Below, one piece after another: positions 6,332-64,000 of a stretch of DNA of 64,000 nt. A model generated the notes under the pieces. The model searched no databases. It worked only from the letters and a program-made list of their open reading frames with translations, and was not told the origin of the DNA. This DNA is from Perkinsus chesapeaki ATCC PRA-425 (lineage: Eukaryota > Protista > Perkinsozoa). The stretch lies in contig JAAPAO010000126.1 of NCBI GenBank assembly GCA_013115145.1, positions 3,918-67,917 of the forward strand, in the 5' to 3' direction. Positions within the stretch are counted from its first letter, which is position 1. Each line of letters begins with the position of its first letter. Both the position numbers and the translations under genes were made by a program.

Positions 6332-9300
6332 TCACTTTCTAGCGGCGTCTTGTTCCTCTGGTTGGTAATCTTTATTCTTCTTTATAATAACGAAACCTTC
6401 AATAACCTTAGTTACCGGTATGTACTCCTCAGTAGCCAGCTCAGCACGATCAGTGCACGACAACAATACCTAACCAACAGCAACAATCTACCATATCAAC
6501 GCTGCATTCTAGCCTACGGGAGTAGTATGGGTCTGGAAACCAGTGATAGACTTTGCCTGCTTACCAGCAATACCAGTAGTATCAACAGCTTGTCCAACAC
6601 GAACCTACATAGAGCCGATGGATGACGGATATGCCGCCGGTCGATCCGCAAACCTTACTGGGACGCTGATTGGCTCAGGCTCACTGCCGTCCTCCTTGTC
6701 CAACAGAGTCACCACCATACGAGGGTATCTAAGCAAAATGGATGGTGTAGGTAGTCGGACTGCTGGAATAAGTCCTACATGCATGGTATGAGATAATATA
6801 GCATAAAGTGGTATTGGGAACCGAAGAGCGTCTTATCGATGCTAAGGGCTCCTGCGTACAATACCACCAGCATTGATGCCAGTGAAGTTGGGTTAATGAG
6901 GTATCGGTCACTGTGAAGTGGGCTTAATGACACCAAACCCTTACCACAATATCTGATGAATGAAGTTTATTATAACAGCACATGACACGGCCTAAGGCTT
7001 ACAGCATTCCCTGAGCGATCCTCACTGCATAGAGGGCGTTGGGGCTGACGGAGTAGTATGCAGCAAGTTGACGGAGAAGCCCAGCTAGACGAGAGTTATT
7101 GGTACCGGCACCAACAATACCTAAGAAAGAGATGGATATGGAACAAGGGGAAGAGTTATACCCATGCTGAGGATGGCGCATTGGGCGACCTCCTCATCGG
7201 CGTCATGAGACAGCCTAGAGAGGGTATCAATAATAGTGTATCTGAGACCATATAAATTAAAGCAGCGAAACGAATAGCAACAACAACCTACTTGGGATTG
7301 CTGGCAAAAAGCATGGCCAAGGTAAGGGGCACACCTCGCTTGATAGATGCAGGACAATATCTATTATTATAATGACATACTTCATAACATTTGAACTTAC
7401 TGAAGGATGTTATCCATAGCCCTTACGGTCATCTCTGTACCAATCTCCTCACCGAGCGGTATGAGGCCAATACCGAGCACGGCAGCCACTTGATAGTATC
7501 GAGCAGCTCGCTCCGCATTCTGTTGCGCGCTCTCTGATTCATGTTAGCCATGCCAAACCCAACTGAAGCTTTGACCACCTCACCTTCGAGCTCATCATCC
7601 TCATTAGGTGAATTCTCGCCATCAGCCGCGGCAGCATCGGCCTGCTTGTCGTCGGCCACAGTAGGCTTCTCCGTAAGTAGGTGTAATAGCTCCTAACACA
7701 GTAATACAACCAACCATGTTGGTGAGGAGCAGGAGCAAGGGTGCCCACCTGGACCTTAAGCACGTCACCGCTGCCAGCATACCCACAGGACTTCACAACA
7801 ACAGTACAGAGATTGCCTACAGGGGCATGCACGGGGTTTACGGTGATGGAGACCTACGAAGCTTTTCCTCCTTTACACCTTGCTCTATCTCATCTAGCAG
7901 CTCATCAACAGGGTTACGGTCTGGCATACTCTTGTCTCCACCTTCAGCTGACATTGACTGAATACTAACCCAGTGGGTGACCTAAGACTCACCTGGTAGG
8001 ACTGAGCCGCACTGGAGGTAGAGGATACCCAAAGCTATTGCAAAGAAGCAGACGAAGACGTCCGATTCCGCGGAGAAGGTGGGCAACTGAAGCAGCAACA
8101 TTCTAAAAGCTTATAACAAGCCTTTGCCAATCACCTCTTGTCTCTCCTGTATGGTAGCCATAATGATGTCCTTTATATCGGTATTGCCGGTCCCAACAAA
8201 GACCAAAGCCAAGGATATGGACGCCAATGCAGATAGGGCTAAGGAACCTACACAACGGTCAATGTAGGCAGTAGCAGCCAACTGCTGATGATACACTACC
8301 AGCCTCGGTGTCGACTACTATGGGAGTGATGTTTTCTGCCAGATCTTCACGACGCGATCCAGAGTAGGCAAAACCAAGGCCCATAACAGCAGCCTGAGAA
8401 TGCCTCCCAGCAAGGTGTTGTCAAAGGTTGTCTCACCATTTTAACGAGGGGTTCGCTGCTGTCCAGTTGCTCGGCTAGAAGGGCCCATGCTGGATCGACA
8501 TCAGATGTAACACCAGTGGATGCCAAACCAAAACCGAGCATGGCGCCAGCCTTAACATTGACATTCTCAGACCATTGATATCTGAAACCCGATACCATCA
8601 TTCCCGTGGAGGTTCGATCCCCAGCAACAGCCGTTTACTTATCAATCTGAGCAAGTCCCTCATCGACATCCCAAAGCATAATAGCACCCAATGAAGCAGC
8701 AGCTGCCATCATACCTAGGCGGAGCGAAGCGTTTCATGAATAACTTTATATTTGCAGTAGATTCGCACGCCTCCTTATTACCTCTATCTTTGTTCTTATA
8801 AAGCCATTGACTCCCCTCCACCGTCATAAGTTTATCAGTACCGAAACCGACATTGACAAGAGCGTTGACATACGTCGAGGCAAGATTCTGCTTTGCTGAG
8901 TCAATAACCTAAGATACGATTCTCAACAGCTCGAATAGAAGAGCCCATAACACTACCGCAGCGCCAGGGTTCCTGCCTCTCTCTTCTAGGTGGGTCTTGT
9001 AGACATCCTCCGGCGCCTTAGCTGGAGTAAAGACGTGGAAAGGAAAGGTAATGGAGGCAAAACTACCTTCAACGACATCAAGGTCCTTGGCGAGGCTATG
9101 ATAAGTGCTGGACAAGCTCTCATTGGAGAGAATAGATATCTAAGCTTCAAGCATGCACTACATCCCTCCCAGGATTAGCGTACGAGATCGGAGTCCTCAT
9201 CCTCATCCAACCCCAACTCCTCTGCGGCCTGCAGCGCCCCTCCGCTGGCTCTCCCCGATGAACGGGCGTAGATATAGCAAAGCTGCCGAGCAATCGACCT

Positions 9301-10755
9301 ATAAAATGAGTAAGGGGCAGATGGTGAAGTGATAGTACTACCGATCCTCTTTAACAGCTATGGCAGCCTTCATGGTGTTGCGAACTCTACTGAAATCATT
9401 CATCCTCATGGCGATGCTGAGGAAGATACTAAGACAAGGAAAGGAGGCGATAGCCACTCACATGAGAGCGTTGGAAAGATCCTTCATCTGGGTAAAGATC
9501 TCATAGGTCACATTTAAGAGAACCCTCCTCTCCTCGGTATTGGCAGCAAAGTGGGCGAGCCCAACCAAGTACTGGCAGATCCTAGGCGCTGTGACGCTAT
9601 CGACAAGCTAAAGAAAAGGAGGATCCCAGGGCCATCTTAGAGCTGCTTACCTGAAGCAGCTTCGATATTCCGTCGGTCTCCGCTAGTAGATCCACCGCCT
9701 CGGTTTCGGCACTGTGACGGATATTATACGGGACCTGATTTGAGGAAGGAGCGGTATGAGCTAAATGAGCATATTGATTACTATTTGATCAACCAAATTG
9801 ATGAGCTCGGTGACATCCTGTCCCTCGGATATACGATTATGATATTCTGTGGCGATTTCACCAGATATGGTCCTATGGCAAGACCAACTCTCCAACGATT
9901 TGCACAATTCCTGTCCCGTTTATTATTACCTCATAAACTCCATACCCCACTTAGTTATATCTTTATTAGTACCGGCTAATCTATATCGCAGACTAGCTCC
10001 CTTTTTAACATGACCAACAGAAGGATGTTCTTCCTTCTTGCTTCCCTCAGCCGCAGCAGCCTCCTTGGCAGGCTCCTCAGATGAGGTTACAGAGGCAGCC
10101 GTGCCAGCAGCCTCGTCGCCGGACTTCTGCTCCTTATCCTTTGCCTTCTCCACCGGAATCGTTGTAGAGAGAACCTACATAAAATGCAAGGTAGACTCAG
10201 GCTCGATTCCCTCCTACAGCAAGGACATCAGCAAGCTCCTTCTTATTCTGGCCATCAGGCATAGCTTCATACCTGATACGGTAAATAAAGAAAGCCTTCC
10301 CTCGTCCTCTTACGCTGAAGCTAACACTGTGAAATGGGCCCTTAGGAACTTCAAGGGTTTCGGTACAGAGGTCATACTGAGGACGGTATATCACTACCAT
10401 TAACAACAACACCCCCTACCTGCTGGCAGCTGATCTCATTTCCTCCCCGATAGCTTGAATAGCTCCAAGGACATCACCCGCCCTAATAACATGAAATTGA
10501 AGCCGCCGAAGCATGGGAGTATCCTACCCAGTAGTGATCGTCTCGACTTGCTTCTCCAAAAGGCTTTTCAAATGTTGGTCCTCTTCAGACTAAACAAAGC
10601 CCGCAATGTCACGACGTCTTGATGGCGGATGCTACCAATTCCTTCTCTGCCTCCAACTTGCGCTTTTTCTCCTCCATAACACGCCTCCTCTCTTTCGCTG
10701 CTCGCTCTGCCTCATCAGCTGCATGTAGCGCTTTCTTATTATCGCCACTGGCCAT
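6332..10755 (-). CDS. RPN1: 26S proteasome regulatory subunit RPN1/PSMD2, many exons
   Basis: [23 protein letters not shown]; [28 protein letters not shown]; [13 protein letters not shown]; [17 protein letters not shown]; C-terminal [25 protein letters not shown]. Confidence 0.95.
8582..8638 (+). other. RPN1 intron carrying an antisense tRNA B-box-like motif
   Basis: 57-nt intron of the minus-strand gene; plus strand reads ggaGGTTCGATCCccagc at 8608-8625. Confidence 0.5.
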
Positions 10756-11213: not shown

Positions 11214-13266
11214 CTATCGACGCTCCCGACCAGTCCATCTCCCCGATGTCGATGGTTGACCAAAACCCCTTCCTGGTGCTGCAGGATTATACACCTATAA
11301 GAGGCAGTGCAGCGGTATCCGTATCTTCAGTGAGCCCTACTGTATAGGTACCACTAACCCTCTCTGGTTTAACACCATACGGCCATCTCTTACTTATCTG
11401 CTGCTTTACCTAATAAACTAATACTCAACGAACATTAAGGTATCTCCAACGTGCAGCACACGTATGGAGTAACAACGACGACAGCTTGGAAACTTGCTGC
11501 CGAGATATGCTACGAGACGTCTAGTAGTCCAGCATGCTCTTTGTTTGAGCCTCTTTATTGTAAGATTTAAACTGATAACCCTATAGTGGAGTGTTGAGAT
11601 AAGGCTCTATGTAACCCTATCTATAACTGATAACCCTATAGTGGAGTATTGAGATAAGGCTCTATGTCTATCCTATCTATAACTGATAACCCTATAGTGG
11701 AGTATTGAGATAAGGCTCTATGTCTATCCTATCTATAACTGATAACCCTATAGTGGAGTATNNNNNNNNNNNNNNNNNNNNNNNNNNNNNNNNNNNNNNN
11801 NNNNNNNNNNNNNNNNNNNNNNNNNNNNNNNNNNNNNNNNNNNNNNNNNNNNNNNNNTAGTATTGAGATAAGGCTCTATGTCTATCCTATCTATAACTGA
11901 TAACCCTATAGTGGAGTATTGAGATAAGGCTTTATGGCTATCCTATCTATAACTGATAACCCTATAGTGGAGTATTGAGATAAGGCTTTATGGCTATCCT
12001 ATCTATATTATCATTCCTATATAACACTTCCAACAGAGCACCCCACAATATTACCGCCACAGGCTTCCCAAAATTAGCAGGTGGAGGCTTAACAAGATGC
12101 CGGGTGTACCTATACTGTCATCCACCAAGCATGAGAGGATGACAGGAGCATCTCACCGAACAAGTTTGCCAGTCTGAGGATGCTTAACATTCCTTGGTCT
12201 ATATCTATGACGCCATAACCTTTGCTGCAGCATCCACTTAACTTTATCACCATCAACAGCAATAGCATTAACCGTCTGAACAATAAGCGTATCGATCCCA
12301 TCCCAACGTAGCCAGCCCTTTCCCACCTTAGAGGGGTCCTTAAGCGCCATATAATTGAATCTAATAAGCCTGAGGCCAAGCTGCTTGACCACCCATTTGT
12401 AAAGCTCAAAGTCTTTGATGAATAAAGCCTTCATTACCCGATTCCCTGTACTAGGTTCCCATACCTCCTCGGTGCACTGTCAGCTTACTTCGACAAAGTG
12501 CCATCTTTATAGCCTGCTTAGCTCTTGTATTTCTTTCCTGCAATATATTAGTTGCTCGCATATTAAGTATCCTCTCTGTTAATCTATCAACACTCTCTTC
12601 AACCTCCTATTATACCCCTCATTACATGGCTATTTTAACAGGCAAGCTCCCAGTGTCAAACGCAGACCTCTGGAACTTCTGCAGCAGCTGGTATCGTCGG
12701 AACCTAACCCCACAGCACTCCCCCACCACCACCATCTGCCCTACTTCGAGACTTGCTTCTCCGAGGCGCATGCCAACGACAGTGTCTGCCGTAACTCCGC
12801 TGGTGCTGCACTCAAATCATCTCCACTTAGGTTGTACCTATCAAGCCTCTCCTTTGATGTACCCCTTCCACCCTACACAAAGCCGGCCGGCCTTTGAGCT
12901 CTCATCAACAGGAATTCCTTCTCAGCCGACATCTACGCATTGCAAGCTCTACGGCCGAGACAATCCTCCTCCTACTTGGAAAAGCGTCTTTATTGGTGCG
13001 CATTTCTGTGCCCTATTTCCCGTGAAGCGGTGATACTCTAGCTTTGGCAGCTGGTATTTGTAGGGCATCGGCCCTTGATTAGGCGGCAGCTTCACTTTAA
13101 GGTATGGGTTCTTGGGGAAAAGATTCTTTTTCTTCAACTTCACCTTGGCGAACCCTCGCCTTTGCTGACCGCCAACGATCCACCCAGCTGAAGAGATAGA
13201 ACTACTACTAGCACAGATAGCCGATTGAAGGAGTAAGGGCAGTCCACCGACGCTCCGAGGAATCAT
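11214..13266 (-). CDS. MRPS15: Mitochondrial ribosomal protein uS15m with long extensions, multi-exon
   Basis: Presequence-like N-terminus; uS15 motifs FDTGSLPVKIA and KDFELYKWVVKQLGLR; 3' exons (WPYGVKPERVSGTYTVYNPAAPG..) below 11530 are tentative. Confidence 0.75.
11571..12007. repeat. Tandem repeat, unit about 56 bp, spanning an assembly gap; probably intronic in uS15m
   Basis: Unit actgataaccctatagtggagtattgagataaggctctatgtctatcctatctata, about 3.4 copies before and 2.7 after the N-run. Confidence 0.95.
11762..11857. other. Assembly gap (N-run)
   Basis: Run of N inside the tandem repeat. Confidence 1.
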
Positions 13267-24241: not shown

Positions 24242-26893
24242 TTATCTTCCACACAGAGCCATCTCCTAACATCCATCATACCAGCACCGCCCCCACCAAA
24301 CCCTAATACCTCTTCTGTCTGCACCGTCCCCTTCGGTAGAAAGTCATATAGTTCCGCACCGTACTCGGCCAGGAGCCTCTTGCGCTCTTCAGCAATGACC
24401 TGCAAGGGAATACAATTAACAACCAGTTGGAGCCAACTCAGATGAGCACCTTCTCCCGAACCTCATCAAACTTGAGCAGCTCCTCGTACTCCTTCCGCTC
24501 CTTCTCCCTCTCCGCATCAAACTGCCTCTTCCTCTCTTCGACCAACCTACCATCACAATCTACCGTCACTGCGCCACAGAATTCCCATACCGGTCAACCT
24601 CTCGCTTGTGCTCCAACACCTTCATCCTTCTCCGCTGGGCATTCATCTGCTCAATCTTAGCATCCTAAGCCATCACCATCCCGCCAGCCACATCCCTTCT
24701 CTCCTACATTAGCGAACTTAGCCATCAACTGCTCCCTAAAGCGGGCCTCCTGCGCCTCCTCTTCCTGCCTTCTTTTCTAAACTTGCAAATCCCTCTGTAA
24801 CCCAATCCCCACAACTTCACCTCTTTCATCTCCATTTGATACTCATAAGCTGCCAACATGTCCTCTCGGTCCTTCGCCCTCTTAGCAGCTTCAGCCTAAT
24901 AACCACCACAGCAAAGACTAAAAGCAGCACTTAGCCACCAATACATAACAACTCTAAGAAATGGAATACAAAGCAAATATGAAATCCACAGATCCAGTTT
25001 GCTTCTCTAGGAGATGTTAACAAGCATCCACCAATGATGCTCAGCTGCCGCCAGTGATCCCCTCTTACCTTCTCTCTTTCCCTGCTCTTCTTTTCCAATT
25101 CCTCCCAAAATAACTCATTCCTATAGTACTCCAATTCAGCATCTTTAGATGCCTTTGCCGCTTGTTCGGCTACACCACCAAATCCCCCAACTCCCCCCTA
25201 CAAGAGCAGCATCAGCAACCCTACCCATCATCTTATCCAATATCCGCTTCTTCTCCTTCTCCTTAGCTGCCTTCTCGGCATCCAACCTACCAACGCCGCC
25301 GCTCCTACCCCACAGCCTGACCTCTACTCCTACCGCTCTTCCATCTCCCTCTTAGCTCTCGCATAGGCCTCAATCCTTGCCTCTTCCTCCCTGTCAGCCG
25401 CCTGCTGCTGCCGTCGCATCCTACCATCCAGCGTGACTCTCGTCCCCAGCCGCCATCAGCAATCACCTCGCTGCCTCCTCGGCGAACTCCTTCAGCTGTT
25501 TCTGCGTATCTAGCTGTTGCTGCCTCCTCCTTTCCATAGCGTCCATCTCCTCCTGATTAAACAAAGGAGTGGTAGACAGTAACTTCTTCAGCTCTAGTAG
25601 CCCGATATCAGTAAGATGCTATTGTGCACCCCTAACGAAATGCGCTCTTGCCGAATTTGCCGAACTTAGAGTCACCGATACTATTACATTTCACTTCAAG
25701 AGCCCTTTACATTTCGCCATACATAGCTTAACGTTATATACTATATCTAAGCTATCATATATGATATTATATAAAATGCTTTTATAGAAATTATCCCACC
25801 ACATTAACAGACTTGATTATTACGAATTGAGTAACAAGTCCATAAATATTGTATCCACGTAATATCAGTACAAACACCCCAGTGATGCTAACCAAAGTCT
25901 TACCTTCTGAATCCGCCTCACTACAGCGTCCACCTGAGCCTTCTCTCTAAGATGCTCCTTCAATGCCTTTGACACCAACGACACTGTTTGTTGAACAAAG
26001 GAAAATGCGTTACAATTTCACGCTGGAGTTCCTTTTCTTCGATCTGCTTCTGCTGCAGGTTCTTGGCATACTCTCTCTTCTCTTGCTACAAAAATACCCA
26101 ATAATCCTAGCGGAGCGATGCACATACCATGCCTACCACAGTGTACTCCTTCAGCTGCTCCTTCTCCAAATCTCTCAAACGTTCTGATTCAGCCATTACC
26201 TCCTGCTCTCCGCGACATCCCTACCGATTTCCAGCTGGGTCTCCAACTGTTCCTCCAATCGACGTTGCTCCTGCGCCCTATACTCCATATCCAACAACTG
26301 TGCTGCCCTCTCCCTATTGACCTACCCTTCCCTTATAAGCAATAACACCCCCTATTCCCATCCCCCCACCTTAGCCAGCTCTATCCTTGCCCTCAATTGC
26401 TTCAGTTCATCGCTTTCCTCGCATATCCTCCTTCTAAGCTGATCCTCCCTAACAGCCCTGGCCTGTCTTGCCTCCAGCTCTGCAGCTGCTGCCTCCTCCA
26501 TAGCCATTATCTACACCCCTCCTCCTCATCATCAACAACCACAGTGTAGTTAATACCGTCTTCTTAGTCTCCTTATGAGTGGTCTCTGCTAAATATTCAG
26601 CATCAGCTGTTCTCTCCCTTGCTATCTCATCCTGCCTGAGCGACACCACTAGCTTACCCCACATGACAGCTCCTTACTCTCTTTTCCATCGCTTCAACTC
26701 CACTCTCTTATCGCTCTTACTATGCCCACCTACGACACAATAAAGGAGACAGCAGCAGCAGCAGCAGCAGCTGCGCAATAACCTTACCAAGTATAAGCTG
26801 ATCCTTGAGCATCTTTCCCAAAGATTCATTCCTAGCTTCAACCTCCCGAAACTTCGCCAACTCCCTCTCTCTATACCGTCTTAGCTGTGCCAT
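24242..26893 (-). CDS. MNS1: Meiosis-specific nuclear structural protein 1 / axonemal microtubule inner protein (TPH domain), multi-exon
   Basis: Coiled coil with RICEESDELKQLRARI, FREQLMAKFA..IEQMNAQRRRMKVLEHKRE and IAEERKRLLAEYGAELYDFLPKG; start approximate. Confidence 0.8.
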
Positions 26894-53420: not shown

Positions 53421-56400
53421 TTAAGATGAAGACATCCCTCGGTGGAAGTGTGGCTGACTGTCAACTTCTTTCTGGGTCGGCATTCGCTCGTTTTCAAGGT
53501 CCATCGATCGGGCCTCGGCAAATTTCTGCAGTTCATTCTTCAAAGCATCACGACCAGATAATAATAAACCCGGTGCTAACCTGGTAATATAAATATAATT
53601 AATATCAATAAATATATTATAACCTATGTCCTGGGCATACACCTTTAAGATTGATAATAGTCTCATTCTCTTCTCTAAGGGTTTTAAACATAAGCATCAT
53701 TCTACTTACCTAAATTAATAATATTAATAACATCATATATACTGTTACAGTCTGTATCTTCTTCCTCATACGGTCTGCCTTCTCCTTAGATATAGCCTTT
53801 CCACTAGCTTCAGCTTCTCTACCTAAACCATATCAGCTCCACCCCTCTCCTACCAGTCAGCACCAGCAGCACCAATCCTCCAACTACTACCTCTACCATT
53901 AGTACTACTTTTCTCAATAGCTTTGGCCCCCTCGGCCATCATATGTTGATGAAGGCGTGCTGCTAGCGACACGGATTTATTCTGACAACAACGGCACAAG
54001 ATTCCACAGCCCGATTACGTACACCCGAGATCCACCAGTAGCTTATTCCAGTCCGACTGCCCGAGCCAAACCGCAGGGCAATCTTTAATGCTCATACCAA
54101 ACGAGATGACTACGTTCCCTGTACTGTGCCCTACACAGTACTGGTTTACCATACAGTAGAAAATGTAAAACCGTACCACTGGATACTATAAATTCCGTCT
54201 GGGCTTCCGGTCTCTGTGTAGTTTCCACTATCAGTTAAGTTGCACTAGTACTACTACTACCACGACGACCGGTACAACTCTATGATGCCTCATAAGCCCT
54301 ATAACCTTATTACTTGCTCCTCCGACAAGCTTGCCAATCGCGCAAGTTTGAGCTGTTGGAGATCGGCCTGTGGCAGTTGAGGGAGTTCCGCGTCAGCTAC
54401 ATCGGGAGCACGAGCGTACTGAGTAAGGAACAGCGTGAGTGTTCATGGAAAGTATTGAATAGCTACATCTCCTGACTCGTTCTGAGGATTGAGGATGTAG
54501 AATAACATCTCAGTTATCTTTTCCGCTACAAATGGCATAGACCAGGCAAATACATCCATAAAGTTAGGTAGATGATATCTATTTAATAATAATCATTAAT
54601 TATAATAATAATATCACTTACGGATGCTTAGTGAAGTTGAATTGTAATATGTTCAAAGTATTATTTTCAAACTTCAATACCGCTCCCTAAAATAATATTA
54701 TATTTTATATTTATAATATATATTACCTTATTATTATAAACATCACAATAATTAGGTGCTGAGAATATAGTAATAACAGATGGGAATCCTGTTGCCTCAT
54801 TCGTTCCTGAATAGAGGTCACTACAGTAAAGCGATTAACACTAGTCAAAGCTTTCCTCAGTAAAATCACAGTTCAGACGAGGGTGTCTCACTGACGAGGA
54901 GACCACCGTGCTCTTTCGATAAGGCCACTCTCTGGGCGCTGCTACTGATCTGGTCGATTATATAGTCATTTCGGCACAGACTTTCCGGAGACCGACGCCA
55001 AGAGACCTAGTCTATATTAAACCACTTTGGTTCATGTTTACCATAAGTAACTCATCACCTTGGATGCGCAAGTTGAGCTCTAAAATATCTTTATCCCGCC
55101 TCCCCTATTATTACTATGCATTTTATATCCCTCCAACTGTGCCTCATGTGCTCTAATAACTGACAATAATCTGACCAGCGAATCCCCATCCACTTTACAC
55201 TCCACAAATCGTACGAATTTTTCCCTAAGAACTTCGTCGCGGCCTCATAAGTGTAAAAGAAGCTGCAACCACGGACCTACCAACAGCGGAATGATATCAC
55301 TGCCGCCAGCACTACTACGTCATTTGGAACGAAGGATTTCTCCTTGGACCTAAATGCTACTGGGCCTTCCTTCTCCTCCTCTGGATCGCTCCACAATATA
55401 TCACTAGGGTAATTAGTAAGGGAGAGACAAGGCTTTATGAAATAGTACCAAAAAAGACCTTGTCGAGGAGGCTCTTGAAATCGGTTAATATTGTTGAAGT
55501 CATTAAGGGTATTCAAATCAGGTGACAAACCGCCGTGGATACAGAGGAATTTCCCTGAAGGGTCAACGATAAAAGGCTGAGAGGAGTAAGGCGCTACCGT
55601 TGACAACAGCAGCAAGCGGCAGACTATCGAAGGACTCCATAAACAACTCGTAGACAGTTAGGTTGTACTTGTATCTGCAAATCGATCAGATGGCACGCCT
55701 ATCAACCTTGTGAGAATCTTTAGACGCACCAATGACGGATATAAGATTCACAGACTTAGGAAGTCGAGTCTCAACCGCTGGTTACCCTTTTACTCGCATT
55801 CATCCCGAAAGTTGAAAAATGCAGTCATTTGGCGACATTCATGATTCCCACGTAATAATGTTATCGTTTTAGGATAATTAATCTTTAATGCGTACCTATT
55901 ATAATATTAAATAATAATATATATAATTATTACAATAATAATAACACTTCAACACTAAAACTACCTCTATCAACATAATCACCAAGGAAGAGATATCTAA
56001 TCAACAACAAATTAATGATGATGAGTTAATAATAATACCGTACTGTGTTGTAGATGGATCACCTCCAACATCCAACAACTTCATTAAATCATAATATCTA
56101 ATAATAATATTATTTATTAATTTATTAATTATTATTACTGTCCATGTATATCCCCAACAACTGTTATTGGATCTTTAAGTTTAACCATATTAGGTTCGGC
56201 TGCACAAAGCTCAGAACACCATTTAACTATTCTATTAATTGATTCAATATACAATCTTCCTTCACCAAACTAATAATAATATAAATAATATATTATTATA
56301 TATATAACTTACTAAATGCTTTTTCAAACATCGCCAATCTGGTGGGGATGTCTCACCACCTGGGAATAGTAACTCTGGTGACAGGGGCTGACAACGAACC

Positions 56401-56499
56401 TCATCTCCTTCCGCGCATACATATCGTTATTACTGCTCTCGGTGGTGGACTAACACTTCTTATCGGTCGATCGTGGAGAGGATCCTTCAATGGTTCCAT
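53421..56499 (-). CDS. CNA: Calcineurin catalytic subunit A (PP2B), tandem copy B, apparently intact
   Basis: [12 protein letters not shown]; GDIHGQ, GDYVDRG, LRGNHE, HGGLSP, SAPNYC; CaM-binding RKKIQT..; autoinhibitory DLENERMP. Confidence 0.93.
55780..56389. repeat. Near-identical AT-rich block shared with 59076-59685 (exons plus introns of calcineurin A)
   Basis: About 610 bp with only a handful of substitutions or indels; similar pairs at 53514-53789/56826-57101 and 54500-54798/57462-57760. Confidence 0.95.
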
Positions 56500-56708
56500 T
56501 CTACTCTCGAAAATAGTACCCAAACTACAGATAACATCTTTTCCCCTTTCCGATGAGCCTCCAAGTCCCCCTGACTTGACAAAATCCCAAACCTTAAGGG
56601 GAATAGTATTCTTTATAACACGACATTTGCTGTATATTAATAATGGATCATCATGGACTACACAATAGCAGAAATCACACATGGTGATGGTGGTGCGAAT
56701 AAAGTGTA

Positions 56709-59700
56709 CTAGGGCGATAGGGTCGGTGAGGCAGGGGACGATCCACCATGCTGGTGAAAGTGAGGTTGACTATTCACTTGTTCTTGGGTCGGCATTCGCT
56801 CGTTTTCGAGGTCCAGATTCTTGACCTCGGCAAATTTCTGCAGTTCATTCTTCAAAGCATCACGACCAGATAATAATAAACCAGGTGCTAACCTGGTAAT
56901 ATAAATATAATTAATATCAATAAATATATTATAACCTATGTCCTGGGCATACACCTTTAAGATTGATAATAGTCTCATTCTCTTCTCTAAGGGTTTTAAA
57001 CATAAGCATCATTCTACTTACCTAAATTAATAATATTAATAATATCATATATATCATTACAGTCTGTATCTTCTTCCTCATACGGTCTGCCTTCTCCTTA
57101 GTCGATTCCTTCACCGGTGACTCAGCCTCCCGACCTGCCTCATACTACCAAATATACCCCATAAACTAGCATTACCTTCCTCAACAACCTTAGCAGCTTC
57201 CGCCATCATATGCTGGTGTAACCGCGCCGCCAATGACACCGATGCATTCTGAGGTTCTCTCCATTCCCAACAGAGACCCAACCCACAACTACCTGCTCCT
57301 CAGAAAGACTTGCAGATCTCGCCAAGTTGAGCTGCTTCACATCAGCCTGTGGCAAATCGGGCAGTTCTAGCTCGGATACCTCAGTGTCTTGGGAGCCCTG
57401 CTGGAACCGTGCAACGGTAGAGGAAAAACAAGGCCACTACAGCCTGTGGCTTCAGTAGATGGAATAACATCTCAGTTATCTTTTCTGCTACAAATGGCAT
57501 AGACCAGGCAAACACATCCATAAAGTTAGGTAGATGATATCTATTTAATAATAATTATTAATTATAATAATAATATCACTTACGGATGCTTAGTGAAGTT
57601 GAATTGTAATATGTTTAAAGTATTATTCTCAAACTTCAATACCGCACCCTAAAATAATATTATATTTTATATTAATAATATATATTACCTTATTATTATA
57701 AACATCACAATAATTAGGTGCCGAGAATATAGTAATAACAGATGGGAACCCTGTTGCCTCTATCTTTTCTAAATACAAGTAATACACTAACTACATCCAC
57801 ATGTGCTTCCCAAATACATGCTATCTGCCACTCGAGAAAGCCATCTTTCGCCCAACCACTACGGAAAATATCCACTTAGATTCTAGAAGCTACAAATGGC
57901 GACGAGACTCTCGTGAAATGCGCGAAGATTTTTCATTTCTTATCAACAGAAGGAGGCATCCACAGGCGTGGCCCAAATAACCACTGATAAATCACTTCAC
58001 TTGGTTAACCACTTTGCAATCGTGTATCGTTTATATGTAGGCTAATAGGATTATATTATTGAACAAGAGATCTAGCCATCACTTGGCTAGCAAGTAAAGT
58101 GCGGCTCGAACCGTTTGCCGTCTTGGACCGAGTCGTAGCGTGAAGTCGACATGTGAACTAGAGTCTATATTTCCTCAACGAGTTAATATAGATTGTAAGT
58201 AGCTCCTTCCAAAGTAAGCCACCGAGTTGCCCAAAGTCAATGATGATCGAGAGCTCCCTACTGACCCCCCTTTATTATTACTATGCATTTTATATCCCTC
58301 CAACTGTGCCTCATGTGCTCTAATAACTGACAGTAATCTGATCAGCAAATCCTGTAAATAGTGAAGGGACAACTAAGGAGTAGCTACGAGTTCTTCCCTA
58401 GGAATTTACTAGTGCCGTCAAAGGTGAAGAAGTAGCTACATCCACGCACCTAGCATCAGTAGCACAGTAACCAAGGCTAAACCCATTGAGCTACGTCGTT
58501 GTGGACGAATGGTACTTCGTGCCCTTTCGATGATGCTCCCTCGACTTGCTCCTTCTCAGGGTCACTCCATAGAATGTCACTAGTAACACTATAACGGTAG
58601 TAAAACCAAGTGTTCTAGTACCAAACGATTCCCTGTCGAGGAGGCTCTTGGAATCTATTTATATTATTGAAGTCACCTAGACCACTGAGCTCCGGGGATA
58701 GGCCTCCGTGAACACACAAGAATTTGCCTGGAAAATACCTGTATCCTGTATCGGTGGCGTCTTACACTACCGTTAACAACAGCAGCAAGGGGCAGGTTGT
58801 CGAAGGACCCCATAAACAACTCGTAGACACTCATATTGTGCTTGTACCTGGTCAGAGAAGCATCCAATCCGAGGTTCCTCAAAAATGGCATCTCCGTAAT
58901 GAGAAGGTGCAATAGGAAGTTTAATAGGAAATCGGAATCTCCTGCGAACAGTTGACGTTCCTCTATGACCCCCTGTACGTAGTGGCTTGGGTGATCGATA
59001 CAAACAACGTTATTGATGGTCCATTGCGAAGACCGCGAGATCTATCCCACATCGGCCGACCGGACATCAGCCGCAGGTTACCCTTTTACTCGCATTCATC
59101 CCGAAAGTTGAAGTATGCAGTCATTTGGCGACATTCATGATTCCCACGTAATAATGTTATCGTTTTAGGATAATTAATCTTCAATGCGTACCTATTATAA
59201 TATTAAATAATAATATATATAATTATTACAATAATAATAACACTTCAACACTAAAACTACCTCTATCAACATAATCACCAAGGAAGAGATATCTAATCAA
59301 CAACAAATTAATGATGATGAGTTAATAATAATACCGTACTGTGTTGTAGATGGATCACCTCCAACATCCAACAACTTCATTAAATCATAATATCTAATAA
59401 TAATATTATTTATTAATATATTATTTATTATTACTGTCCATGTATATCCCCAACAACTGTTATTGGATCTTTAAGTTTAACCATATTAGGTTCGGCTGCA
59501 CAAAGCTCAGAACACCATTTAACTATTCTATTAATTGATTCAATATACAATCTTCCCTCACCAAACTAATAATAATATAAATAATATAATATTATATATA
59601 TAACTTACTAAATGCTTTTTCAAACATCGCCAATCTGGTGGGGATGTCTCACCATCCGGGAATAGTAACTTCGGTGACAGGGGCTAACATTGATCGAATG

Positions 59701-59796
59701 AGTGCCGGGAGCAGACCTTGTCATTATTACTGCCCCAGGAGGTGCACTGACTGATGCAACTGGCCGATCGCTTAAAGGGTCCTTTAAGGGTTCCAT
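56709..59796 (-). CDS. CNA: Calcineurin catalytic subunit A (PP2B), tandem copy A, apparently intact
   Basis: [12 protein letters not shown]; same catalytic, CaM-binding and autoinhibitory motifs and same intron positions as copy B. Confidence 0.93.
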
Positions 59797-60734: not shown

Positions 60735-61877
60735 ATGGCAGCATTACTACGCACTATTGGGGCAGCTGTAGCGGCTTTGGCTGCTATATTTTTCGGCGTG
60801 TGCTTTACCTTCGACATGGAGGCATCTCGTGGGTATTTGCCTATCCTGTGGAGAGCGGTGTTGAATAGTTGTCGCTCCTGCAACCGAGCTCATGTAGAGG
60901 ATTACACCCAATATGATATCCCATCTAATCTATCTGATAAGGTTATTCTTATTACAGGAGCATCAAGTGGTATTGGTTATCAATCTGCTAAGTTATTATC
61001 ATCTCGTGGTGCTAAAGTTATATTGGGTATCAGAGGTACAAGACAAAGATTAGATAATATAACACAATCTATACCTGGTCAAGTATTAGCTCCAGCACCT
61101 TTGAATCTGAGTGACTACAGCAGTATAAGGGATTTCGTCAAAGCCTTACCCACGGCCGATATCAACCATCTCGATATCCTCATCCTGAATGCCGGCAAGA
61201 GGGCCATGACATTCACTACTAACTCAGATGGCGTTGAATGGATGCTCGCCGCACACCATCTTGGTCATGCCTATCTTTTCGAGCTTCTAACACCTTTGGC
61301 ATTGCGCGCTCCTGGAGAAGTCCGCGTCGTCCTGACTGCGAGTGTTGCACATATGTGGCCTTATCCCGAGGGAGTTCGCTATAAGGACACTGAGGAAGGC
61401 TTCAAGTCAAACAACGCTTATGGGACCAGTAAGCTGGCGAATATCTTGTATGGCCGCGAACTGGCCAAGCGTATGGAGAAGGCACATCCTCACAAATTTG
61501 TGGTCGCCTCTGCTAACCCAGGAGCGGTCCATACCGAATTCTCCGACATGGTTCGTAATTTCCCCAACTGGGTGGCATACAACGCCAGTGTGGGGGCGAT
61601 GCCGGTCCTCAGGGCAGCAGTCGATGCAAATGTCACCACAGATGGGTGAGTTTAACTGCGCTGCATTTTCTTCAGGTCGGCCTATATTGGTGGTAGGTAC
61701 TATGTCCCAGTGGGACTGCGAGCCGACTGGAGACGCGATACTGCATACTGGTGGACTTGTAACGAAACACTGCGAGCTGAGTTATGGGAATGGACGCAGA
61801 AGATTCTTTTGAGAACTCACCAAACCGTTGGGGGTGCCGTCCCCGTGAAAGGCTCGCTCATGCTAAGCGACGTGTGA
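60735..61877 (+). CDS. Short-chain dehydrogenase/reductase (retinol dehydrogenase/WWOX-like) with N-terminal anchor, copy 1, 2 exons
   Basis: [28 protein letters not shown] (YxxxK), ANPGAVHT. Confidence 0.92.
60929..61103 (+). repeat. 175-bp AT-rich coding block shared by three SDR paralogs (also 62508-62682 and 63870-64000)
   Basis: Identical except two C/T differences in copy 2. Confidence 0.97.
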
Positions 61878-62316
61878 ATGGCACTACGCTGTAGCCTTTG
61901 TTTTCCTCGTTTAGAGACCATGACAACCAGTCCCCTAGCGATACTTGTTCGTAGTTAGGCGGCTGTCTATTATTTCATTTATTTCTATATATGTGACGTG
62001 TTGCGTTGAGATAGATGCTCTACAAGCTAACCAGCACTCTAAAGATGGTACAACATGCCCGACTGTGATGCCATGTACTCCTCCTCTGCACATCTTACCT
62101 GGTAAAGTTGCTAGGTTGGTCGGTGGTCGTCACCAATCAGCTGCAGCAGGGCCCCTGAAACTCATATTACTCTGTTATTGTTGCTTGCCTATCGTGGTGT
62201 ACACAGCAAATGTGATAACTCTGCACGTAGAGGTTTTGCTACATGACATAAATTATACTATTCACCAAGTATCCTAGTCGTAACTCCGTCCCTTCAATTA
62301 GCGGGTTAATCTTACC

Positions 62317-63466
62317 ATGTCATCCCTCCGCACCATTATAACGTCGCTTCCAGCTATTCTCGGTACCAGTTGGAAGTACCTCTCGGCTCTATTTGGGTAC
62401 GATATTCTCCACGGAGGACTTTTCCTTCTCCGTCAAATGCTCACAACATTTCCCTGCCTTAATTTCTGGCACTATAACGACTACGCCGAGCGGAGGCTCC
62501 CCAGAGATCTATCTGATAAGGTTATTCTTATTACAGGAGCATCAAGCGGTATTGGTTATCAATCCGCTAAGTTATTATCATCTCGTGGTGCTAAAGTTAT
62601 ATTGGGTATCAGAGGTACAAGACAAAGATTAGATAATATAACACAATCTATACCTGGTCAAGTATTAGCTCCAGCACCTTTGGAGCTATCAGATTTCGAT
62701 AGCGTTCGTGAATTCGCCGAGTCCCTCCCCAAAGCTGGTATTGATCATTTGGATATCGTTCTGCTTAATGCTGGTGGAATGGTCGAAGAGTATCGTACCA
62801 ACAAGGAAGGTATCGAATCCATGCTGGCTGGTCATCATCTTGGTCATGCGTATCTCCTCGACCTTCTCATGCCCCTGCTACTACGAAGCTCGTGGAAAGT
62901 TAGAGTTGTAGTCACCAGCAGCCTTGCCCACATTTTCTCATTTCCGGAAGGTGTCCGATATCACATAACGAAAGCCGACTTCTCACCATTTGTCGGATAC
63001 TCTAACAGCAAGCTCGCCAACCTCCTTTATACCAGGGCTCTATCAGCTCATTTGGATATCTCCTATCCGGGCAAGTTTAAAGTCAATGCCGTACATCCCG
63101 GATTTGTTAGAGTTCCTTTAACGGAGAACATGGCCCCTCGTTTTCTAATGTATAACCCCTTAACTGCGGCGCTGACAGTTCTTAGACCAGCATTCGGCGA
63201 AGATGATGAGGAAGGCGACGGGTAGGTTGGATGGACTCTCTGACGGTATCTTCTGGTGGAACGCTCCCTCGGGAGATGGAAGTTAATTGAGTTAAGTCAG
63301 ATACTATCTACCAGTTGGATATCGTGGTGATTGGTATAAAGATTCGGCGTATTGGTGGACATGTAATGATACTATGATAAATGATTTATGGCAATGGACA
63401 AGAAATATTATTAAACAAGTTCATGATAATAGACAAGTACCTCAAGGTTCATTGATGCTGGATTAG
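62317..63466 (+). CDS. SDR paralog copy 2, 2 exons
   Basis: [28 protein letters not shown]; last exon YYLPVG..WWTCN..LWQWT. Confidence 0.92.
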
Positions 63467-63696
63467 GGAGACCACCTGCAACTCTTCATACAGGGGACTC
63501 CTCCTAGTCTCTCTCCTTTTGTGTTTGCCCTCTCCCTCCTTTCATGTGTCCTGCAGTCACATACCATATTCTCACACCAACTCGATACGTGATTCCCACC
63601 ATGAGGCGCAAGACTTTCTAGGATTGCTGTAGTTGTGGAGTTACTAGTGCAGCCAATTCCGTCTTATGCTGCTGTCCCTTAGCTCCAGCCTTTCCT

Positions 63697-64000
63697 ATGA
63701 GGTGCTGCGGGACTTTGTCATTGCTTATCATATCCATTGCTATTGCTTTCGCAGCGATTCTGGTGCCATGGAGACCTCTGCAATATCATTTTCGCCAACT
63801 CACTCACTCTTTTCCGATTTTGAATATCTGGCACTATAACGATTACACTGAATATGATATCCCATCTAATCTATCTGATAAGGTTATTCTTATTACAGGA
63901 GCATCAAGTGGTATTGGTTATCAATCTGCTAAGTTATTATCATCTCGTGGTGCTAAAGTTATATTGGGTATCAGAGGTACAAGACAAAGATTAGATAATA
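63697..64000 (+). CDS. SDR paralog copy 3, truncated by window end
   Basis: [55 protein letters not shown]. Confidence 0.88.

Follow-up and report, generated by a model that had tools for sequence, protein, structure and literature searches.

Coding blocks shifted towards A/T in a tandem SDR gene array of Perkinsus chesapeaki suggest an AT-directed fixation bias in long-lived gene conversion tracts

How can the same short coding block be nearly identical, and almost free of G/C-ending codons, in three neighbouring genes whose other parts have diverged? The question is raised by the end of a 64,000-nucleotide stretch of the genome of the clam parasite Perkinsus chesapeaki ATCC PRA-425 (assembly GCA_013115145.1, contig JAAPAO010000126.1, positions 3,918 to 67,917; hereafter the window, numbered from its first letter), in which genes for short-chain dehydrogenases/reductases (SDRs) lie head-to-tail at 60.7-64.0 kb on the forward strand. 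As the initial annotation had noticed, a 175-nt block is common to all three tandem genes, at 60929-61103 in copy 1, 62508-62682 in copy 2 and 63870-64000 in copy 3, where 131 nt are visible since the window and contig C288 both end at 64000. The part from DKVIL to APL comprises 56 codons, only 5 of which have G or C as their last base, versus 26 of the next 40 codons in copy 1, and the G/C content at third codon positions (GC3) switches sharply, within one or two codons of where paralog identity ends; these counts and the sharp edge were confirmed. The 40 codons upstream of the copy 1 block include 23 that end in G/C, the probability of finding ≤5 G/C-ending codons among 56 at p=0.5 is 6e-11, and the GC content of copy 1 is 0.35 in the block, 0.49 downstream and 0.52 upstream of it. 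The answer that we favour, with a probability of roughly 0.6 as judged from sequence, is that this shift would reflect a DNA-level fixation bias towards A/T, acting in long-lived tracts of gene conversion between paralogs.

The homogenised segments were delimited copy by copy. The full 5′ AT-shifted block of copy 1 spans 60903-61103 (GC3 0.09, GC 0.35; identity 98.8% with copy 2 and 100% with copy 3), with a core at 60929-61103 common to copies 2 and 3 and a part at 60903-60928 common to copy 3 only. Copies 1 and 3 are thus 100% identical over the 131 visible nt and have ~26 nt more in common upstream that are absent from copy 2; on the copy 3 side, this extension lies at 63841-63869. Copies 1 and 2 differ at two sites only, both C/T at CpG as first described: 62547 C versus 60968 T (AGC-G in copy 2, AGT-G in copy 1) and 62565 C versus 60986 T (TCC-G and TCT-G, respectively). 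A second AT-shifted homogenised block is exon 2 of copy 2 (63301-63466), which recurs at C1908:598-727 and C88:1-105 with 98% identity in a DNA search of the species' own genome and has codon endings that are nearly all A/T. Copy 1 carries the 5′ block together with a normal exon 2 (61697-61877), which is not homogenised and has normal GC3 and mixed codon endings.

The comparison with two sister species, in which exons were searched and aligned separately, indicated how the blocks came to be identical. Syntenic arrays are present in P. marinus, with four SDR genes followed by a SET gene, and in P. olseni, where two calcineurin genes precede six SDR genes and the SET gene comes last. In the 5′ block, identity is 98.8% between copies 1 and 2 of P. 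chesapeaki, 100% between genes 1 and 2 of P. olseni and 93.8% between genes 1 and 2 of P. marinus, versus 70-72% between P. chesapeaki copy 1 and gene 1 of either sister species. Downstream of the block the order is reversed, with 52% between copies 1 and 2 and 66-67% between copy 1 and its counterparts, and outside the block exon 1 of copy 1 is orthologous to gene 1 of each sister species. The identity order in exon 2 is as in the 5′ block; the unhomogenised exon 2 of copy 1 is 59% identical to that of copy 2 and 65% to those of gene 1 of P. marinus and of P. olseni. In the homologous segments, paralogs are 94-97% identical in P. marinus and 99-100% in P. olseni. Sliding identity drops from 1.0 to 0.8-0.6 in a few codons, so that tract edges are discrete, and non-coding DNA lies inside tracts as well, namely the last part of the intron of copy 2 and entire introns of the neighbouring calcineurin genes. 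Because paralogs are closer than orthologs in the blocks and the flanks reverse this order, the Rossmann/TGxxxGIG block and exon 2 can securely be read as homogenised within each of the three species by recurrent non-allelic gene conversion. The SDR duplications themselves are older than the split from P. marinus and P. olseni.

Conversion of the same segments did not have the same compositional outcome in the three species. The tracts of P. marinus and P. olseni have a GC content of 0.48-0.51 and a GC3 of 0.39-0.50, versus 0.33-0.35 and 0.09-0.12 in P. chesapeaki. Both sisters homogenised these segments at normal GC, so that conversion there goes back a long way, whereas the shift to A/T took place in P. 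chesapeaki only. Between paralog identity and GC3 the rank correlation is negative in each species, at -0.68 in P. chesapeaki and -0.31 and -0.32 in the sister species; it was computed in overlapping windows, which inflates its p-values.

The same kind of tract is found in a second, unrelated gene family, the calcineurin A tandem pair (53421-59796, reverse strand) that lies ~1 kb upstream of the SDR array. Its tracts are 95-100% identical with a GC content of 0.16-0.31. Introns inside these tracts have a GC content of 0.00-0.08 (0.25 in one of them), versus 0.33-0.54 for introns outside, and consist of A/T only apart from the splice-site G, for example at 59396-59433, 59197-59240 and 57543-57582 on the minus strand. 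That the tract introns are nearly pure A/T argues that the force acts on DNA and not on codons. The SDR genes had been proposed as a second family with the calcineurin pattern, and in this respect the proposal holds, as in both families the AT shift coincides with homogenised tracts, and GC is normal where the copies have diverged; the cause then suggested, methylation or deamination targeted to CpG, does not.

The direction and type of the substitutions were examined with the consensus of P. marinus and P. olseni as the reference, at sites where the two species agree. In the SDR blocks, 41 changes from G/C to A/T (S>W; 25 transitions and 16 transversions) and 5 changes from A/T to G/C (W>S) were counted, versus 134 S>W (92 transitions and 42 transversions) and 110 W>S in the SDR flanks and non-converting paralogs (p=5.5e-6 for direction). 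The calcineurin pair, compared with P. olseni, gave 108 S>W (78 transitions and 30 transversions) and 16 W>S in tracts, versus 113 (80 and 33) and 78 outside. Pooling the two families, 149 S>W and 21 W>S in tracts stand against 247 and 188 outside (p=5e-14). The mix of mutation types, unlike direction, did not differ between tracts and flanks: S>W transitions to transversions are 25:16 in SDR blocks versus 92:42 in flanks (p=0.45), and 103:46 in pooled tracts versus 172:75 outside (p=0.91). At silent third positions, S>W changes were found at 29/42 in the blocks versus 75/201 in the flanks (p=2.5e-4), and W>S changes at 1/38 versus 52/119 (p=3e-7), making the latter ~20-fold rarer in blocks. 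Composition-neutral changes were not raised (10/276 in blocks versus 79/1411 in flanks). The Poisson-corrected rate ratios of blocks to flanks are 2.5 for S>W and 0.046 for W>S, from which we infer a scaled directional bias of roughly 2-5, about 2-3 from the S>W rise and about 4-5 from the W>S fall; with a scaled strength of about 3-5, the rates seen here would be recovered. At codon positions 1 and 2, 12 block changes were towards A/T versus 4 in the other direction, with 59 versus 58 in the flanks, a difference that is not significant (p=0.11). In P. chesapeaki alone, nearly all silent sites of the tracts have gone over to A/T, and so have several amino-acid sites (R to K, A to S, V to I, E to D and K to N).

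These spectra bear directly on two explanations that place the cause in mutation. One is that repeated sequence is methylated at CpG, or hit by a deaminase in the manner of repeat-induced point mutation (RIP), and decays by C-to-T change. It is suggested by the two copy differences, both C/T at CpG, by a TpA/ApT index of 1.10 in the block, and by one C5 DNA methyltransferase domain in the genome (C138:655-1557, with an in-frame TAG). However, at both variable sites T is found in 8/8 homogenised copies of P. marinus and P. olseni (AGT and TCT), so T is ancestral, and copy 2 gained each C (at 62547 and 62565) by a T-to-C change that created the CpG. When the dinucleotide context was tabulated as the initial annotation had proposed, only 3 of the 41 S>W changes in SDR blocks fell at an ancestral CpG, two of these three being transversions, and the other 38 lay elsewhere; for calcineurin the share at CpG was not higher in tracts (24/108) than outside (32/113). 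Transversions make up 39% of the block S>W changes, as in the flanks, and these 16 of 41 argue against a deaminase or RIP-like process because such a process yields transitions only. At 1.16, the index (CpA+TpG)/(ApC+GpT) does not resemble that of RIP; no reading frame is broken, the copies stay identical rather than diverging, and other near-identical repeats of 120-1400 nt are unaffected. Polarity, context and mutation type together contradict the CpG-methylation mechanism, which we consider extremely improbable. More weight, though still well short of likely, is given to mutagenesis that accompanies conversion without any fixation bias, in which damage to single-stranded DNA (cytosine deamination and guanine oxidation during strand invasion and repair synthesis) or an error-prone polymerase would move the tracts faster to an AT-rich equilibrium. 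The rise of both transitions and transversions among S>W changes is what C/G damage predicts, the shift is limited to conversion tracts, and Hicks et al. in 2010 reportedly found mitotic gene conversion to be mutagenic in yeast. Yet the deficit of silent W>S changes points to a fixation bias, because extra damage to C and G cannot lower the W>S rate; composition-neutral changes were not raised, the sister species convert the same tracts without a shift, and tract introns with 0-8% GC are more extreme than any mutational equilibrium known to us.

The W>S deficit fits any fixation bias, selection included, and selection for A/T at the level of RNA or protein synthesis (weak mRNA structure or slow codons), with conversion spreading the selected variants, was therefore weighed against a bias that sits in DNA. 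The highly expressed genes for EFL (EF-1alpha-like) are unshifted, as would be expected if codon selection there opposed the shift. Nevertheless, introns in the tracts of the neighbouring pair have been driven to pure A/T, unrelated enzymes are affected (SDR, calcineurin and IDH) in both 5′ and 3′ segments, the orthologous segments of two sister species have normal GC3, and the edges track paralog identity and not protein domains, so that such selection is quite unlikely. Its simplest form, translational selection for A/T-ending codons, is ruled out by the pure-A/T tract introns and by the EFL genes, whose GC3 of 0.65-0.68 indicates that A/T-ending codons are not the preferred ones. A low probability is likewise given to the blocks having been pasted in from an AT-rich donor, either an unassembled heterochromatic master copy or an introgressed relative. 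Sharp edges, AT-shifted sub-blocks of the IDH genes that lie inside longer identical stretches, and a fragmented assembly that breaks at the blocks would all suit a donor, but the 41.7-Mb assembly (3544 contigs) holds three copies only of the 5′ block and three of the 3′ block, all in the SDR array. A donor copy elsewhere in the assembly is ruled out by whole-assembly DNA and protein searches, which matched the blocks only in that array. In addition, the amino-acid divergence of the blocks from their counterparts in the two sister species is in line with species distances, most replacements are A/T-directed, and several unrelated families would each require a donor of their own. Finally, the identity might be false, an assembly artefact of collapsed or chimeric repeats, given that contigs end in or at the blocks. 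Two block copies, however, lie in one contig with unique flanks, in frame and with two differences between them, collapse cannot create AT-ending synonymous codons, and NCBI gene calls exist on the fragments; we regard this as very improbable indeed.

Under the favoured reading of a DNA-level fixation bias, new G/C-to-A/T changes, transitions and transversions alike, would be spread to the other copies by conversion, and A/T-to-G/C changes would arise, as in copy 2, but be overwritten. The bias could sit in heteroduplex repair or, alternatively, in initiation: a copy richer in G/C, if it suffers more breaks, would more often be the recipient. The shift would accumulate slowly, in cores whose repeated conversion began before the species diverged; flanks of normal GC would come with recent or longer conversion events, and genes of very high expression would resist the shift through codon selection. 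As the shift would need long recurrent conversion, recently homogenised stretches would be expected to keep normal GC. The wider proposal, that since the split P. chesapeaki gained a strong AT-directed bias of non-allelic conversion, of scaled strength about 3-5, that has recoded every long-lived tract wherever sites are unconstrained, in exons and introns, is in our estimate about an even bet. As regards repair factors, MutS_V domains are found at at least four loci in the assembly. No match to the Pfam UDG domain (PF03167) was found in the whole assembly at E≤1e-5, a weak negative since genes are intron-rich and the assembly is incomplete; loss of UDG was rejected as a cause, as it would explain neither the transversions nor the restriction to tracts.

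Several observations weigh against the DNA-level bias, most of them from homogenised sequence that is not, or not evenly, shifted. A third family, the IDH tandem pair on another contig (C2910:5790-6911 and 7941-9065), shows the same AT-shift pattern, but patchily: sub-blocks with a GC3 of 0.05-0.20 lie within longer stretches of 98-100% identity, other windows of which have a GC3 of 0.40-0.55. An SDR pair ~4 kb apart (C652:12981-13607 and 9054-9530) is a conversion-like 73-100% mosaic whose near-identical windows have an unshifted GC of 0.45-0.60, and the EFL tandem pair (C2848:23236-23967 and 26197-26823), likewise conversion-like, has 94.9% identity across 1416 nt in a mosaic of 87-100%, a GC3 of 0.65-0.68 and no AT shift. 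Within the array itself, the 115 nt that follow the 5′ block (62683-62797 in copy 2) are nearly identical in copy 2, C1908 and C2288, though not in copy 1, and have a GC3 of ~0.39 by hand count, homogenised yet barely AT-shifted. The C652 pair, the EFL pair and this stretch rule out that every homogenised stretch is AT-shifted. Conversion alone is therefore insufficient, and any account must also call on age, frequency or opposing selection. The SDR blocks, moreover, provide 46 S/W changes, a small number, and polarisation was made without a true outgroup, although the composition of the flanks and of the old paralog assigns the shift to the branch of P. chesapeaki. The contrast between unfixed and fixed changes is likewise drawn from few sites: the two unfixed differences in the SDR block are derived W>S changes, which gives p=0.019 for SDR alone and p=0.06 with calcineurin, the unfixed differences in the calcineurin tracts being 4 S>W and 1 W>S, with no W>S excess.

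In each of the genes that carry the blocks, a single short phase-2 intron separates a long exon 1 from a second exon of ~55 codons. Exon 1 of copy 1 (60735-61645) is an open reading frame from the first ATG through the GG before the intron and matches adh_short with E 1.9e-20; its 51-nt GT..AG intron (61646-61696, phase 2) was placed by analogy with copy 2 and by tblastn exon limits. Exon 1 of copy 2 (62317-63221) is an open reading frame of 302 aa that matches Pfam adh_short with E 7e-20 and is followed by a 79-nt intron (63222-63300), the last ~18 nt of which are common to C2288. Exon 1 of copy 3 starts at 63697 and is cut by the contig end at 64000. The matches to PF00106 (adh_short) score 73.6 and 71.7 bits versus a curated cut-off of 26.6, the TGxxxGxG, NAG and YxxxK (Y-x-x-S-K-L-A-N) motifs are present in all aligned copies, and each SDR has a hydrophobic N-terminus. 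The best named matches are 'DHRS12' and 'retinol dehydrogenase' of Perkinsus and RDH12 of animals, at 34-39% identity, a likeness to the RDH11-14 and DHRS12-like classical SDRs, from which the Perkinsus family differs in being a tandem array of 4-6 genes, each with a hydrophobic segment at the N-terminus and a short conserved exon 2.

The three genes are part of a tandem array of at least five membrane-anchored classical SDRs, located between the calcineurin pair and a SET-domain gene. A whole-genome search indicated that the array continues on contigs C1908 (727 nt), C2288 (605 nt) and C88, so that at least five SDR genes are split over four contigs. C1908 and C2288 both start inside the final bases of the 5′ block, and C1908 ends within the exon-2 block and C2288 at its very start; the assembly thus breaks at blocks at the end of C288, at both ends of C1908 and of C2288, and at the start of C88. 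Because the assembly breaks at repeats, the sequence of the copies can be trusted more than their order and linkage; one 5′ gene part has probably been collapsed or is missing. C88 carries the last gene of the array, an old paralog in which both segments have normal GC (GC3 0.57), followed by the SET-domain gene. Elsewhere in the window, at 11560-12063, a tandem array of 56-nt units was observed, with six overlapping 122-nt copies of 61-97% identity and a local dip in GC.

Biased gene conversion is treated as a near-universal pull to G/C, which shapes composition, mimics selection and confounds tests of adaptation. If the proposed bias is true, the P. chesapeaki tracts would represent strongly AT-biased gene conversion in a nuclear genome for the first time, with the polarity of GC-biased gene conversion (gBGC) reversed between sister species; a literature search found no paper on gene conversion in Perkinsus or on nuclear AT-biased conversion. 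Tracts that run to a GC3 near 0.1, with introns free of G/C but for the splice sites, would be instructive since both sister species convert these tracts and remain unshifted. The polarity of conversion bias could then flip over short evolutionary time, and comparing the three species could help to identify the factor, in repair or in break initiation, that determines it. In practical terms, short-read assemblies and gene models of Perkinsus fail at such identical, AT-recoded blocks, which also drive conservative amino-acid replacements in enzymes.

Three known systems invite comparison. Fungal RIP, or methylation-induced decay, is alike in being a homology-dependent AT enrichment limited to duplicated DNA, but it makes only C-to-T/G-to-A changes at a preferred dinucleotide, its copies diverge and its frames are destroyed, whereas the P. 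chesapeaki blocks have no CpG context, intact frames and identical copies. A conversion bias towards A/T has been proposed before in organelles, reportedly by Khakhlova and Bock in 2006 for the tobacco plastid. AT-biased conversion in plastids has been called exceptional (PMC4524490), and in Saccharomycodes mitogenomes it was not excluded (PMC7846184). These organellar cases differ in that they concern few sites or an indirect inference and not tracts between nuclear paralogs. The third is concerted evolution of tandem paralogs by non-allelic gene conversion with gBGC, which likewise produces mosaic genes with sharp edges, keeps the orthology of flanks and alters composition only inside tracts. 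Converted paralogs are said to be usually GC-enriched or unbiased (reportedly in Galtier in 2003, Kudla et al. in 2004 and Assis and Kondrashov in 2012). The W>S excess and raised GC expected under gBGC were not found in the P. chesapeaki blocks; what sets these tracts apart from that system is the reversed polarity and the extreme size of the shift, with a GC3 of 0.09-0.12 in the SDR blocks and 0-8% GC in the tract introns of the neighbouring pair.

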